Sequence record: MT133560.1
Direction: 5' to 3' (one strand)
Length of the DNA stretch: 64,000 nt
Below are positions 1 through 26,908 of this stretch, piece after piece; position 1 is the first letter of the stretch; each line of letters opens with the position of its first letter. The notes under the pieces were generated by a model. It was not told the origin of the DNA and made no database searches. It saw nothing but the letters and a program-made list of their open reading frames with translations. A program made the position numbers and the translations under genes.

Positions 1-998
1 GTTACTTCTTCTTCAACGTTATTAGACTCAACATCCTCAACCTCTTCTGCTTCACCTTCTTCATAACTAACCGGAGTTTCTTCATCAACAATAATATCTT
101 CATTAAAGATAGGCGTATCTTCTTTAATTAATGAAGTATTACCTTGGTTATATTCAACCATCGCTGATACTAGTGAAATAAGGCGCCTAGCTATTTGCTG
201 GGTATCATAACCTTTATCATCTTTAATTTCTGGATCACGACGCCATTGATCAAGCATCCCTAAGTTAATAACAAAGAATGAACTTTGTACACGGAATAAA
301 AGATTAATGTTACCGTAATACTTAGCATCGATGACATTCATGAAAGAACTTTCACGATCATCAGAAACCCAGCGAACTAAATCAAATATATTTAGAATAT
401 CAGGTGTATTGAATTGATTAGCTAGATCTTGAGTTAAACCCCCTCGTAGTTTATTAAAAGAAGAAGGAGGTGGAACTAACTCAGGTAAGTGTACATCAAT
501 GAACTGGTTCCAACCAGGAAAACGTTCACATGCAGCCGCTACGCCACTCCAGAATGTACGCATGTCATTTGACCAACGGAACCATGTAGCTTTATAAGAA
601 GCCATATAATTCCATTGAGGGTTAATTAAATTATAATTCATTACCAGAATGTTCTGGTTTGATAATTTAAAACCGGTATCACTGCGTAAAGGTTTAAAGA
701 AACGGTTCTGGCGGCGAAACTCTTGAATCATTGTTGCTGGGATATTTGAAGTCCTACGTGGATTACCTTCAAATGTAAGCATATCAGTAACATGCTCAAT
801 ATATACTTTACCTTGATGTTTGGAGAATAATGGGTCTGTTTGACTAGGACCCATTACTGCATTATTACCATCGAAGAACTGATAAATGGATTCGAAAGGT
901 AGATCAAGTTTATTTAGAGCATGCAACTTAGGTGACTGAAGTTTAGCATATTCGCGTACACTATAATTTTTCAGAAACTGTGTAATATTTAAGCGCAT
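1..998 (-). CDS. Virion RNA polymerase beta subunit, N-terminal part (phiKZ gp178-like), runs off window start
   Basis: ATG at 998 two nt after the beta' stop; I read MRLNITQFLKNYSVREYAKLQSPKL at the start and an acidic stretch at the window edge; synteny with beta'/gp181/gp182 as in phiKZ. Confidence 0.75.
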   Translation of the reverse strand, partial: MRLNITQFLKNYSVREYAKLQSPKLHALNKLDLPFESIYQFFDGNNAVMGPSQTDPLFSKHQGKVYIEHVTDMLTFEGNPRRTSNIPATMIQEFRRQNRFFKPLRSDTGFKLSNQNILVMNYNLINPQWNYMASYKATWFRWSNDMRTFWSGVAAACERFPGWNQFIDVHLPELVPPPSSFNKLRGGLTQDLANQFNTPDILNIFDLVRWVSDDRESSFMNVIDAKYYGNINLLFRVQSSFFVINLGMLDQWRRDPEIKDDKGYDTQQIARRLISLVSAMVEYNQGNTSLIKEDTPIFNEDIIVDEETPVSYEEGEAEEVEDVESNNVEEEV

Positions 999-24050: not shown

Positions 24051-26162
24051 TTAAAACCGCATATATGCGGGCTGATATGGTTTATACATACGTGTATCAA
24101 AGTCATTAAAATCAATTGCGATATCATACTTCTCAAATGATTCTTTTAGCATCTGATAAATGATTTTATTTTCATCAAAATTATTATTTTTATCAACATA
24201 ACTTTCTAATGACTCTGTGATCTCAAATGGAGATTTAATACCCATAATAGCTTCAACCATTGCCTGACTCCATTTTAGAATGTCATCTGACCTTGTTGAG
24301 ATATTCGGTTCATCTTCTGTATCGAGAGTACATTGATATACGACTGTTTGTGAATCCTGACCTTTACGGTAAATTCGAGCAATAGCTTGTTCTAGAATGT
24401 AATGCCTAAACGGTGAATTAATTGTCACCATAGTATCAGCCATCGTCATACGGACCGCTGTTGAAAGGGAAGCATATGTAGCTACCAATGGATTTAATTT
24501 AGGGTCTTTCTCAAATCTACTGATTATTTGAGGTAAATTGTCATTGGTTTTACCATACACCACCGCCGGATGCATACCTAATTTATTGGTGTACTTATCA
24601 ACAGTATCAACAACCTCAACAAACGATGTAAATGCAATCGTTTTCTTCATAGTTGATTCAGTGATACCAACCCAGTCAATATACGGTACCATGTCCACAT
24701 GGCACTGAATGCGTTTAGCACCTAAAACCCTTCCCAAACATTCACCTTGTATCTTTAGCATAACGTATTTTATAACTGATTTAATATCTCTAAAAGCAGC
24801 TATTTCATTACGAGGTAAAGTTGGCTCTATAAACATTTTTTCATATTGGTTAGATTCTTTAATTTCTTCACCAATGTATCGCGGGTCTTGATTCTTCTGA
24901 ATTATTTTAATCAAATTCTTATAGCGAGCGAAACCATCTTTCTGCGCCTGGGTCTTAAGAGAGTTCTCGTGTATCGCCATTAGTTTAGCCCAATACTTCT
25001 CATCTTCTGGTCGGCGCACAGCATAGAACTTTACACGTTCTCTAATAAAAGCTTCACAATCACGTTTAATGGCATTAAGAGTATACTGTGATCCATTTGG
25101 TATCTTGATACGATACGCTTTTATCCTCGGTGGTAAAACCTCAGTATCTTTCTTTTCAATGACGTACGCAATTAACCCAAAGCGATGTTGGACAATATCT
25201 AATCCTTTCTGTGTCTCTTTTCCAAATGCTTTCTTAAAACGTTCTTCAACCTCATTGGTGAAGAGATCGTCTAATACTCTTAATGCACTTACTAATTCAG
25301 AACCAAGTGCTTTAACAGGGGTACCTGACGCTAATAATCTGTTATTAGAGTTAGACATAAAACATATTTGCTGGAACTTAAGAGATTGTGCAGAATTAGG
25401 ATCGTTCATATTGTGTGATTCATCCAGAATCACCGTAATGTTCTTACCTTTGAATATACCGCTTCTTAATAGATCAATTATTTTATCTTGCGCCTGGTAA
25501 TGGGATATAAGTATTCTTTGACCGTTGTAGGCTTTATCATCAATGGTCGACCATACTTTTTGTCTTTCCTTATACATCTCAATAATAGATGGCTTCCATA
25601 TTAGATCAATAGACTTCTTTTCACAAACAACTATAATGATATCCGACTCAACCATTTCAGCAATAGCCATCGTCATGAATGTCTTACCAGTACCAGGTTT
25701 ACCTGCAACAATATCACCACGTAAACCATACTGGTCAATTCGATAATTATAATTTTCAAAATAAGCTTTTTGAGACTCATCTGGTGTAAATGTCAATTTG
25801 TCTAACATCTTGAAATTGAGTCTACCTGGTACAGAGTTGGTATCTACAGGACGAGTATTTTTTAACCAGGTATATTGAAGCATTGCTTCACGGATGGCAT
25901 TAACAGTTTTAATAGAGATGTATCTACTTCTATAATTCTTTACTGCTTCTAGCATGTAATATATTTCAGGAGCAAAGAATTTATAAAATGAAATACTACG
26001 ACGACTAACCGTGTTAAATAACTGCGTAGCTAATTTAGTGGTTCGCCAATACTTGTTAATATCTCTAATGAATGCAGCACCATCAAAACCACTGATGATA
26101 ATTTCTTGATCAGTTTCAGTAATTGATAGCGAGCCCATTAGCTTCCTAAATGAGTCTATCAT
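24051..26162 (-). CDS. SF2 (SNF2/DEAD-like) helicase
   Basis: GKPGTGKT Walker A, LDESH motif II, SGTP motif III, QAIARIYRKGQ motif VI. Confidence 0.9.
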   Translation of the reverse strand: MIDSFRKLMGSLSITETDQEIIISGFDGAAFIRDINKYWRTTKLATQLFNTVSRRSISFYKFFAPEIYYMLEAVKNYRSRYISIKTVNAIREAMLQYTWLKNTRPVDTNSVPGRLNFKMLDKLTFTPDESQKAYFENYNYRIDQYGLRGDIVAGKPGTGKTFMTMAIAEMVESDIIIVVCEKKSIDLIWKPSIIEMYKERQKVWSTIDDKAYNGQRILISHYQAQDKIIDLLRSGIFKGKNITVILDESHNMNDPNSAQSLKFQQICFMSNSNNRLLASGTPVKALGSELVSALRVLDDLFTNEVEERFKKAFGKETQKGLDIVQHRFGLIAYVIEKKDTEVLPPRIKAYRIKIPNGSQYTLNAIKRDCEAFIRERVKFYAVRRPEDEKYWAKLMAIHENSLKTQAQKDGFARYKNLIKIIQKNQDPRYIGEEIKESNQYEKMFIEPTLPRNEIAAFRDIKSVIKYVMLKIQGECLGRVLGAKRIQCHVDMVPYIDWVGITESTMKKTIAFTSFVEVVDTVDKYTNKLGMHPAVVYGKTNDNLPQIISRFEKDPKLNPLVATYASLSTAVRMTMADTMVTINSPFRHYILEQAIARIYRKGQDSQTVVYQCTLDTEDEPNISTRSDDILKWSQAMVEAIMGIKSPFEITESLESYVDKNNNFDENKIIYQMLKESFEKYDIAIDFNDFDTRMYKPYQPAYMRF

Positions 26163-26229
26163 TGCATTTTTCCTTAAGGGGTATGTAAATATAACTCTAA
26201 GTCATAAGATTAGCTAACGAATAAAAATA

Positions 26230-26395
26230 CGCACAGTGCAATGATATAGAGCAAGGCAGTTTGCGTAAAACGCACTGCACTTTAAGGGGGTGATCCAGTC
26301 GTAAATAAACCGGGGTACTAAAGTATCGTCAGGAACGACACGAACCCCAACTACGGTGCCTTGCTACTCACCGACCTCTAGATAGGGGTCGGACC
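26230..26395. ncRNA. Candidate structured ncRNA with complementarity (plus strand) / similarity (minus strand) to the 16S rRNA 3' end
   Basis: ORF-free, GC-rich, nested stems (agcaaggca/tgccttgct, ggggt/acccc, ccgacctct/aggggtcgg); 26283-26303 is 18/21 identical to the reverse complement of the 16S 3' end; transcription not shown. Confidence 0.6.
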
Positions 26396-26404
26396 TATTA
26401 CATT

Positions 26405-26431
26405 AAAGGAGCCCACCAGGGGCTCCTTTAT
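26405..26431. terminator. Terminator-like hairpin
   Basis: taaaggagccc-acca-ggggctccttta. Confidence 0.75.
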
Positions 26432-26447
26432 GCCATTCATTATAAAT

Positions 26448-26467
26448 TAATTTAAATCTATATTACA
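26448..26467 (+). promoter_or_regulatory. Early promoter (TATATTAC)
   Basis: tttaaatctatattac; core at 26459-26466. Confidence 0.7.
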
Positions 26468-26512
26468 GGATTACCATAAAGATATTTATCCTTTTATAAT
26501 GAGGAAAAGATT

Positions 26513-26908
26513 ATGTCCGATATTAATAGCACCAATGTAACAGATGAATTAGTACCTTATTTTCCATCGGCGGATGCCATTACTAGTTCTACTATTAGGG
26601 ATGAAGTAATTCCTAATATTTTGTTATTCTACAAGAATGCTTTTAGTGACTTCCAACACGTTAGTAATATCACAGGTACTAACCAGATTGCATCAGGTTA
26701 TTTACCAGGTGTAGGTTATTATTTCGAGTATAGTGTTACCGGTAATGCTAATCTTATTCCACCTGAAGCAATTAAAGTATTACGTAATGTAATCACTAAA
26801 AATGGATATAAAGATGACATTACCATCACACCAAAAGGTTTTGGCCTAATCAATTGGTTCATTGTAAGAGTATACGTAGATGAGCAAATTAAGAAGACTA
26901 CTCAATAA
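26513..26908 (+). CDS. Hypothetical protein
   Basis: 131 aa, GAGGA RBS. Confidence 0.8.
   Translation: MSDINSTNVTDELVPYFPSADAITSSTIRDEVIPNILLFYKNAFSDFQHVSNITGTNQIASGYLPGVGYYFEYSVTGNANLIPPEAIKVLRNVITKNGYKDDITITPKGFGLINWFIVRVYVDEQIKKTTQ

Follow-up and report, generated by a model that had tools for sequence, protein, structure and literature searches.

A structured RNA family of Pseudomonas jumbo phages carries a predicted complement of the 3′ end of host 16S ribosomal RNA

In a 64-kb window of the jumbo phage phiKZ (64,000 nt of sequence record MT133560.1; phiKZ genome position = window position + 186605), the 350-nt gap at 26163-26512, between PHIKZ203 on the minus strand and PHIKZ204 on the plus strand, houses a non-coding RNA (ncRNA) unit with a strand complementary to the very 3′ end of 16S ribosomal RNA (rRNA). 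The complementarity is real and strongly non-random, and comparison with relatives identifies the element, through its covarying helices, as a new RNA family of Pseudomonas-infecting chimalliviruses. We propose, with a confidence that lies a little above an even chance, that the element is a trans-acting structured antisense RNA against the 16S 3′ minor domain, with binding and effect both part of the proposal. The RNA probably binds the small (30S) ribosomal subunit or its precursor.

The complementary strand was first noticed in a reading of the sequence alone (hereafter, the original prediction), which reported 18 of 21 identities to the reverse complement of the bacterial 16S terminus and a possible 21-bp duplex. 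We refer to this strand as arm 1, and to its conserved part as the core:

26283..26303, plus strand: arm 1 (TAAGGGGGTGATCCAGTCGTA), a 21-nt complement of 16S nt ~1522-1542, in junction strand J2/3 of the fold described below
26285-26299, plus strand: family core AGG(G/A)GGUGAUCCAG(C/U), within arm 1

As references we used the 16S ends of E. coli rrsH and of Pseudomonas paraeruginosa ATCC 9027, P. delhiensis and other Pseudomonas rRNA operons reached via the published primer PA-SS-F, which is not species-specific. All Pseudomonas 16S copies examined end in ...AAGGTAGCCGTAGGGGAACCTGCGGCTGGATCACCTCCTTA, and the 18/21 identity was confirmed against this terminus. The differences place a G opposite U and, twice, a U opposite G; because all three give G-U pairs, 21 contiguous pairs are possible, starting from the last 16S base, as the original prediction had claimed. 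When both strands of the window (128 kb) were compared with the last 30 nt of 16S, arm 1 formed the longest Watson-Crick/G-U run (21 nt). The next runs, of 14, 13 and 12 nt, are rich in G-U pairs and internal to helix 45 (h45), and ordinary ribosome-binding sites reach at most 10. The predicted duplex of a 17-mer has an energy of about -30 kcal/mol, compared with -12 for an 8-nt consensus Shine-Dalgarno (SD) sequence and -6 for the ribosome-binding sites of gp203 and gp204.

We considered whether the element is an ordinary translation initiation region and rejected this class: SD complementarity is present (16-21 nt, far beyond normal), but a start codon and a conserved open reading frame (ORF) are absent. 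No AUG, GUG or UUG lies at ribosome-binding-site spacing (4-12 nt 3′ of the SD core) in 33 of the 35 member sequences scanned (34 distinct), in line with the earlier remark that no start codon follows the extended SD. The same 35 sequences yielded no conserved ORF after the motif, the longest ORFs encoding 10-34 amino acids.

The family comprises 35 distinct relatives from Pseudomonas jumbo phages (phiKZ-like, PhiPA3-like, Psa21, D6, RVTF4, Noxifer and pPa_SNUABM_DT01) and from uncultivated jumbo-phage contigs of 73-317 kb; we refer to clades 1, 2 and 3 among them. By blastn, the gp203-gp204 gap is identical in ~44 phiKZ-like genomes, 96% identical in SL2 and partly (~70%) conserved in PhiPA3-like phages. 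Motif statistics cover 22 positions, counted from the base opposite A1542, in the 35 distinct members:

Position 1: U (30), C (4) or G (1); 86% pair with 16S
Position 2, opposite U: G (19), A (14), C (1) or U (1); 94% pair
Positions 3-16: invariant except position 6, which is G (27) or A (8), opposite U; 100% pair
Position 17, opposite G: C (25) or U (10); 100% pair
Position 18: C (21), U (6) or A (8); 77% pair
Positions 19, 20 and 22: variable; 23% pair

The pairing shares at each position show that conservation starts and stops where complementarity to 16S nt ~1525-1542 does, and that the variation inside these limits is neutral for pairing. Every member has a contiguous 16S-pairing run of 16-21 nt, and the core pairs in all 35, with pairing down to background three bases beyond it, so that the conservation of the 16S-matching bases, named beforehand as a check, was borne out. 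The argument that the original prediction had drawn from wobble pairs holds as well, and is stronger across the family, where internal substitutions are only wobble-neutral. Its description of a centrally mutated complement of the anti-SD needs qualification: GGGGG is real, but the position is a G/A polymorphism, and Psa21, D6, RVTF4, Noxifer and related contigs have the canonical GGAGG. On this comparison a chance origin of the arm 1 match is excluded, because the motif is conserved across clades that are only 65-70% identical elsewhere.

Members were gathered by exact and degenerate pattern scans of IMG/VR and metagenomes, by BLAST and by synteny. Several routes did not use the motif: a stem-anchored scan for clade 2 returned 11 new loci, all with the motif; a stem-anchored scan for clade 3 returned true jumbo-phage members with the motif in 7 of 7 cases, one of them new (L429); and Noxifer, found by synteny, and D6, RVTF4, Psa21 and the PhiPA3-like phages, found by BLAST, all carry it. 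The pattern GGTGATCCAG..ACGGYGCC was too loose, with >120 matches that were mostly chance, and among the 72 loci matching GGTGATCCAGTC..YRCCTTG only known members were positive with the covariance model described below. One weak covariance-model match without the motif (L402, E 0.85) was discarded as noise. A blastn comparison with E. coli genomes found nothing that matched the element; for a 21-mer sought in 28 Gb, such an outcome carries no information.

Small RNAs of bacteria and phages mostly target messenger RNAs (mRNAs), and by that general habit the motif could be a seed through which an ordinary small RNA base-pairs not with the ribosome but with some other host or phage RNA that has an anti-SD-like sequence. 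We regard this as quite improbable. The window holds no site within three mismatches of the 16-mer on either strand besides the element itself, and thus no obvious phage target; 16S is by far the most abundant RNA with an exact complement; and the match is anchored precisely at the 16S terminus.

The motif lies within a conserved fold. MAFFT alone misaligned P1 and P2 between clades, and RNAalifold found little on the MAFFT alignment, so we used a hand-annotated seed of six sequences to build a covariance model (R1), aligned all matches to it, built a second model (R2) and realigned. The resulting fold is a three-way junction of P1, P2 and P3-P4, with the motif, for which no conserved internal partner was found, in junction strand J2/3:

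26250..26256, plus strand: P1 5′ strand AGCAAGG, which pairs with 26359-26365 and resembles the 16S ...ACAAGG... of the linker between helix 44 (h44) and h45
26257..26277, plus strand: P2 hairpin CAG-UU-UGCGU AAA ACGCA-CUG, a helix kept with covariation
26310..26316, plus strand: P3a (CC) and P3 5′ strand (GGGGU); CC pairs with GG at 26355-26356, and GGGGU with ACCCC at 26344-26348
26326..26338, plus strand: P4 hairpin UCGU CAGGA ACGA, with 5 of 5 pairs changed on both sides
26344..26348, plus strand: P3 3′ strand ACCCC, partner of GGGGU at 26312-26316

Standard pairs make up 93.8% of cells in the final alignment of 34 distinct rows, compared with 69.5% when columns are shuffled, and both sides have changed in 20 of 24 pairs; the covariation score is 0.61 versus 0.17, and sliding the partners by 1-3 columns lowers pairing to 31-37%. 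The alignment was fitted to the model, which favors structure; compensatory changes in P1, P2, P3 and P4 are nonetheless visible in the raw sequences. P1 is paired in 99% of cells, with 5 of 7 pairs changed on both sides, and P3 shows such changes in 5 of 6 pairs. P2 reads GCAGU-UUCG-ACUGC in one relative and GUACU-UUCG-AGUAC in another, and the P4 loop is of GNRA type in most relatives (GGGA, GCGA, GUGA or GAGA). The stem-loop that the original prediction had seen inserted between its two complementary stretches (ggggt..acccc) is real: it is helix P3, which covaries in relatives. PhiPA3, PA1C and HHBS36_1 share the architecture with compensatory changes in the outer stem, which is AGCAAGGCA/UGCCUUGCU in phiKZ, CCAAGGC/GCCUUGG in PhiPA3 and GUCAAGGCA/UGCCUUGAC in PA1C.

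Model R2 matches phiKZ at 26250-26369 with 68.7 bits (E 3e-12), as a single copy in the window. The models match jumbo-phage elements only, with no match among loci that carry the 16-mer as an ordinary ribosome-binding site and none among ~170 chance loci. The order of parts is constant in every member: TATG or TATAG, P1 5′ strand, P2 hairpin, motif, a 10-14-nt linker, P3-internal loop-P4, a bulge with GG, P1 3′ strand, in some members an extra hairpin, and the terminator. As a separate observation, in clade 2 the P1 5′ strand ACAG (L104:4733-4845, L086:4633-4743), or CAGG in L294:662-772, could pair with CUGU (or CCUG) 3′ of P2, which would free the P1 3′ strand.

The helices also identify the strand. 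Helix positions hold 24 G-U cells and only 2 A-C cells, so the plus strand is the RNA. This bears directly on the two alternatives of the original prediction: (a) a plus-strand small RNA presenting AAGGGGGUGAUCCAG to the 16S tail, and (b) a minus-strand mimic of the 16S 3′ end. Under the second, the minus strand would be a decoy of the 3′ minor domain for Era, KsgA, RbfA or ribotoxins; a companion possibility is that the similarity is a non-functional relic or chance. The minus strand does read like a 16S 3′ end with an expanded h45, and the plus strand offers a further likeness, that of the P1 5′ strand to 16S ACAAGG. The G-U to A-C ratio, the plus-strand location of the promoter and terminator signals, and the lack of any small-subunit (SSU) rRNA match even at E <= 10 all speak against a decoy, and the conservation across otherwise diverged clades speaks against relic or chance; we find this pair of explanations barely credible. 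A class assignment as SSU rRNA fragment or mimic was accordingly rejected, with no Rfam SSU match at gathering thresholds, at E <= 10 in phiKZ 26000-26700 or at E <= 5 in 8 relatives, and with the plus strand as the functional one. More generally, Rfam 15 gave no relevant family match on either strand of nine members, no model matched phiKZ at gathering threshold, and a permissive scan of 26000-26700 gave chance matches only. Alternative (a) is borne out in outline by independent evidence, namely the strand signals, the G-U bias, the covariation, the universal motif and the wobble-neutral substitutions; what it says of binding and effects we retain as a proposal.

Sequence signals on the plus strand delimit a predicted transcription unit:

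26249..26431 (phiKZ genome 212854-213036), plus strand: whole predicted ncRNA, ~183 nt, from promoter motif to terminator
26220..26249, plus strand: putative promoter, made up of TATAG at 26245-26249 and, ~20 nt upstream, an A-rich block with TAC; G26249 is the likely first base, placed from sequence rather than by mapping
26371..26392, plus strand: extra hairpin (CCGACC...GGUCGG) between P1 and the terminator, from the fold
26405..26431, plus strand: intrinsic terminator, AAAGGAGCCC-ACCAG-GGGCUCCUUU, then AUGCC (TTAT motif)

The extent 26249-~26431 is set by promoter and terminator motifs of phiKZ type that bound the unit. Late promoters of the phiKZ non-virion RNA polymerase (nvRNAP) contain 5′-TATG-3′, with transcription starting at the G, and middle promoters have an A-rich/TTAC element near -22 to -24 (PMC4666361; PMC8244752). 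TATAG is a variant of the TATG consensus and, on sequence evidence, an nvRNAP-type start motif. Relatives have TATG (clade 2, Noxifer) or TATAG (clades 1 and 3) immediately before P1, and phiKZ, PhiPA3 and PA1C share the A-rich element with TAC upstream of it. PMC10914365 describes phiKZ terminators as a hairpin followed by 5′-TTAT-3′; a hairpin with a (C)TTTATGCC-like tail closes the unit on the plus strand in all members. Relatives in clades 1 and 3 also have a hairpin at the position equivalent to 26371-26392. The terminator at 26405-26431 is near-symmetrical (AAAGGAGCCC...GGGCUCCUUU) and followed by T-rich sequence on both strands, and could double as a stop for minus-strand transcripts that arrive from the direction of gp204.

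A second stretch of the RNA may extend the complementarity. The original prediction had proposed that 26351-26372 continues the 16S complement in the correct order; we define this arm 2 as follows:

26350..26365, plus strand: arm 2, J3/1 and P1 3′ strand ACUACGG UG CCUUGCU, complementary with one bulge to 16S nt ~1500-1515

The last part of the predicted continuation, a TCACC match, lies beyond P1, is variable and found no support. Within the RNA itself, CUAC forms a bulge, GG is the partner of the CC before P3, and (U)GCCUUGCU is the P1 3′ strand; the letters CUAC are not conserved, being CCAC, CAAC or ACC in other members. The remainder of the claim has partial support, by energy and not by identity. 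The best RNAduplex site of phiKZ arm 2 on a 1536-nt 16S lies 27-42 nt from the 3′ end (-20.2 kcal/mol), and in 10 of 12 clade-1/3 members, phiKZ included and with L040, a clade-2 sequence variant, counted here, the best site lies 27-47 nt from the end and adjoins arm 1; in the remaining two, this site ranks second or third. Identity-based alignment of the sequence 3′ of the motif put the best match at the expected 16S site in only 3 of 21 members.

Co-folding gave a similar picture. The phiKZ RNA and 16S form 36 predicted intermolecular pairs with a net energy of -22.8 kcal/mol, versus -12.3 for arm 1 alone, and the two-arm pairing leaves only GAACC of 16S free, the h45 loop that contains A1518/A1519 (E. 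coli numbering). Co-folds of family members with the last 45 nt of 16S have 23-37 intermolecular pairs in two arms and net energies of -16 to -28 kcal/mol, versus -7 to -16 for arm 1 alone and about -0.1 to -4 with a shuffled motif. When P1 pairs were permuted or flipped and J3/1 was shuffled, the native value was reached in at most 3 of 60 trials for 15 of 21 members; because the members are related, the arm 2 result counts as one or a few evolutionary events, not twenty. Arm 1 is universal. A second arm is plausible for clades 1 and 3; for clade 2 the case is weak.

These features suggest how the RNA could act. The phage's own RNA polymerase would make it in the middle or late phase of infection, and the three-way junction, which ties the RNA ends together via P1, should with the two 3′ hairpins confer stability. 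Its long junction strand would present a "super Shine-Dalgarno" without a start codon. After exit from the phage nucleus, arm 1 would pair with the free 13-nt tail of 16S as a toehold and with 3-8 further bases of the h45 3′ strand. In the phiKZ, PhiPA3, Psa21 and Noxifer types, arm 2 (J3/1 and the P1 3′ strand) would then pair with the h45 5′ strand and the h44-h45 linker, swapping P1 for an intermolecular helix and leaving only the GAACC loop free. The anti-SD would then be occupied, either on a 30S subunit or, as is likelier when both arms pair, on a 3′ minor domain that is still immature or unfolded, a target suggested by the burial of nt 1500-1529 in mature subunits; a one-arm form could bind any free 30S. 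In effect, the RNA might compete with SD-led initiation, interfere with 30S subunits late in their maturation, or cap the 16S 3′ end and so shield it from 3′ exonucleases and single-strand nucleases. RNase R begins 30S degradation at the 3′ end (PMC10901742), and some MazF toxins remove the anti-SD (PMC12274833); a protective cap may also guard against such anti-SD-cleaving toxins. We put the full scheme, in which a dedicated antisense RNA uses the anti-SD as toehold, unzips h45 and in most lineages clamps both h45 strands around the dimethyl-adenosine loop to give the phage control of 30S or of its last maturation step, just short of an even chance.

Several points tell against an antisense role. 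A phage reliant on SD-led translation would hinder itself too. Arm 2 requires an unfolded target, because mature 30S keeps 16S nt 1500-1529 folded and buried; the identity-based local alignment of the arm 2 segment with whole 16S is not significant (z = 0.8, with 50 of 200 shuffles as good); and ten other clade-2 members (P1 = GUACAGG/CCUGUAC) have 4-10 better 16S sites. The invariant motif yields no covariation, and its three neutral substitutions are all transitions, the commonest change anyway. Known hosts are all Pseudomonas with one 16S tail, which leaves no host co-variation to compare, and many members came from patterns that include part of the motif. The motif's unpaired probability in single-sequence folds is 0.37-0.59, about the RNA average and not unusually open. 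The clade-2 G-run can pair with a nearby ACCC, and RNAalifold places a 3-bp mini-hairpin inside the motif that is compatible with the G/A position.

The last of these points leave room for a different reading, in which the RNA is real but its invariant strand binds a protein or belongs to the tertiary structure, and the SD likeness is incidental or attracts an SD-recognising protein. The strand might, for instance, form a mini-hairpin in which G-G-R / U-C-C closes a GGUGA loop, or serve as the platform on which an RNA-binding protein of phage or host sits. In other RNAs, junction strands that are long and invariant frequently turn out to be ligand or protein sites. The 3-bp hairpin, the unremarkable accessibility and the G/A polymorphism, which fits a shifted register in which R pairs with U, are all consistent with this, and an SD/anti-SD-like element of OLE RNA is a ribosomal-protein site (PMC12054373). 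A 3-bp hairpin, however, leaves invariance over 14-15 nt unexplained, and a protein or tertiary site does not account for the coincidence of conservation limits with complementarity limits, for the pairing-neutral changes at variable positions 2 and 17, or for the mapping of arm 2 beside arm 1. We judge this alternative unlikely, though of appreciable weight beside the antisense reading.

The surroundings of the element allow a further comparison:

24051..26162, minus strand: PHIKZ203, annotated virion SNF2/DarB-like helicase, divergent from the ncRNA
26513..26908, plus strand: PHIKZ204, with its own early-type promoter TATATTAC at 26459-26466, 3′ of the ncRNA terminator

A gp203 homologue lies divergent and immediately upstream in phiKZ, PA1C, L011, L027, L040, L295, Psa21, D6, RVTF4 and Noxifer, and ~30 kb from the ncRNA in pPa_SNUABM_DT01. 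In PhiPA3 (L003, 214707-217762) the block with the gp203 homologue is inverted, so the gene is downstream of the ncRNA on the same strand. Between clades, conservation does not extend to the downstream gene; the clade-2 downstream set is internally conserved and has no BLAST-level relation to gp204. The ncRNA unit thus keeps its integrity while its neighbours change or invert. At the gp203-homologue locus of 201phi2-1, Ralstonia RP31 and Xanthomonas RTH11, the part of these genomes covered, we found no element.

These arrangements bear on the possibility that the element is a cis-acting 5′ leader, such as a ribosome stand-by or loading site or an attenuator, on read-through transcripts, with the short RNA a by-product of premature termination like the phiKZ "5′UTR-derived ncRNA candidates" (UTR, untranslated region). 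A same-strand gene does follow 30-80 nt past the terminator in clades 2 and 3 and in PhiPA3, and premature 5′UTR termination is common in phiKZ (PMC10914365). We nevertheless rate a leader as improbable: the downstream gene is unconserved between clades, the next gene is convergent in PA1C and HHBS36_1, and past the terminator a separate early-type promoter precedes the downstream gene in phiKZ, Psa21, D6 and RVTF4. Terminators also share no sequence that would allow a conserved alternative pairing with an aptamer-like part, and a -30 kcal/mol duplex would retain 30S rather than hand it over. A riboswitch or attenuator was rejected as a class on the same grounds, namely terminator sequences unrelated between members and a downstream gene that is unconserved and, in PA1C, convergent.

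Some further observations concern the flanks. The early-promoter-like TATATTAC lies between the ncRNA terminator and the next gene in Psa21 (L322:2658-2666) and D6/RVTF4 (L409 ~499-507, L410 ~508-516) as it does in phiKZ, and also occurs in the short gp300-gp301 gap of 201phi2-1 (L396), from which the ncRNA is absent. On the other side, a TATG at 26206->26203 on the minus strand, ~41 nt ahead of the start codon, is a likely late promoter of PHIKZ203. The surrounding block AAGTCATAAGATTAGC (26199-26215), in the gp203-ncRNA interval, is common to phiKZ, Psa21 (L322) and D6/RVTF4 (L409, L410) and inverted in PhiPA3 (L003:1700-1720); it is probably the late promoter and 5′UTR of the virion helicase gene. 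The PhiPA3 inversion breakpoint lies between the ncRNA terminator and this gp203 promoter block. ARAGORN found no transfer RNA (tRNA) gene in the 64-kb window, and an uncultivated 173-kb phage contig (L035) has two tRNA genes, at 63-136 and 875-948 (minus strand), 640-1500 nt 3′ of the element and on its strand. Short "hypothetical protein" coding sequences (CDSs) are annotated over the ncRNA in pPa_SNUABM_DT01 (PA10_00263; L321:2531-2653, minus strand), HHBS36_1 (CDS0179; L006:1656-1781), vB_PA32_GUMS and HPP-Temi (hits H82 and H94), and are probably spurious ORF calls. The covariance model can annotate this gene, missed or mis-annotated as small ORFs, in dozens of phage genomes.

The mRNAs of nucleus-forming jumbo phages must compete in the cytoplasm for host ribosomes, which the phage does not make. 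To our knowledge, the tools known so far for managing those ribosomes are proteins. If the proposal is right, the RNA would add a new layer of host take-over, whether it throttles translation, blocks biogenesis or acts as a protective cap, and would open a new class of RNA-RNA interaction with rRNA as target; it would be the first natural trans-acting RNA known to base-pair with rRNA in phage-host conflict. Should it bind something else, it would still represent a new and well-supported structured RNA family of giant phages. The original prediction held phage RNAs of this kind to be apparently undescribed, and our full-text literature searches agree: none turned up an RNA, of jumbo phages or of phages at large, with such pairing to the anti-SD or the 16S 3′ end. 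In a 2026 review, ncRNAs of phiKZ appear in general terms only, and a related concept in the literature is the tethering of mRNA 5′UTRs by a 16S 3′ extension. The transcript itself may be among the 17 phiKZ "5′UTR-derived ncRNA candidates" reported in PMC10914365. Separately, a phiKZ differential RNA sequencing (dRNA-seq) paper set aside predicted small ORFs, including an intergenic one, in which a ribosome-binding site was present and a start codon absent (PMC8244752), and one of these might be the element.

Among described RNAs, the published ncRNA candidates of phiKZ and 201phi2-1 (the 3′UTR of PHIKZ298, the 5′UTR of p40, and a small RNA upstream of gp182/gp277) come from the same phages: they are short terminated transcripts, supported by evidence of the same type and conserved between jumbo genera. 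The element described here lies at a different locus, and none of those candidates is described as complementary to rRNA. OLE RNA offers a parallel in its P6 region, as an ncRNA with SD/anti-SD-related sequence that is linked to the translation apparatus and binds bS21 (PMC12054373). The OLE anti-SD is paired internally to an SD-like strand and bound by protein, whereas the phage RNA has only the SD-sense strand, unpaired and much longer.

The likeness to 6S RNA, an open-promoter decoy that sequesters RNA polymerase, is one of concept only: a stable RNA mimics a nucleic-acid substrate and occupies a core machine. The two have no sequence or structural relation, and the proposed target of the phage RNA is rRNA itself, reached by base pairing. 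6S RNA was rejected as a class, since the element forms a three-way junction instead of a long hairpin with a central bubble and has no Rfam match. CsrB, RsmY and RsmZ are likewise ncRNAs that display SD-like motifs, there to titrate a factor acting at ribosome-binding sites, but they bind a protein through many GGA loops; the phage RNA has one long junction-strand motif, whose common GGGGG variant lacks GGA. A Csr/Rsm sponge was also rejected, as the element has at most one GGA loop, in P4, that is not conserved (GCGA, GUGA and GAGA also occur).

Bipartite guides and antisense RNAs of the H/ACA type resemble the phage RNAs of clades 1 and 3, in which two arms flank P3-P4 and are predicted to pair on both sides of the h45 GAACC loop, the 5′ arm taking the 3′ part of the target. 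It is a resemblance only: in our reading of the alignment there is no ACA or H box, no associated protein is known, at least 5 target bases stay unpaired versus 2 in the guides, and arm 2 is weak in clade 2. SD sites of mRNAs, including extended ones, share with the element the partner (the 16S 3′ tail), the polarity of pairing and the core GG(A/G)GG. In contrast to their 4-9 pairs, the phage element offers 16-21 contiguous pairs, reaches the terminal base of 16S and enters h45. Neither a start codon nor an ORF follows it, and it sits at the junction of a covarying RNA equipped with a promoter and terminator of its own.

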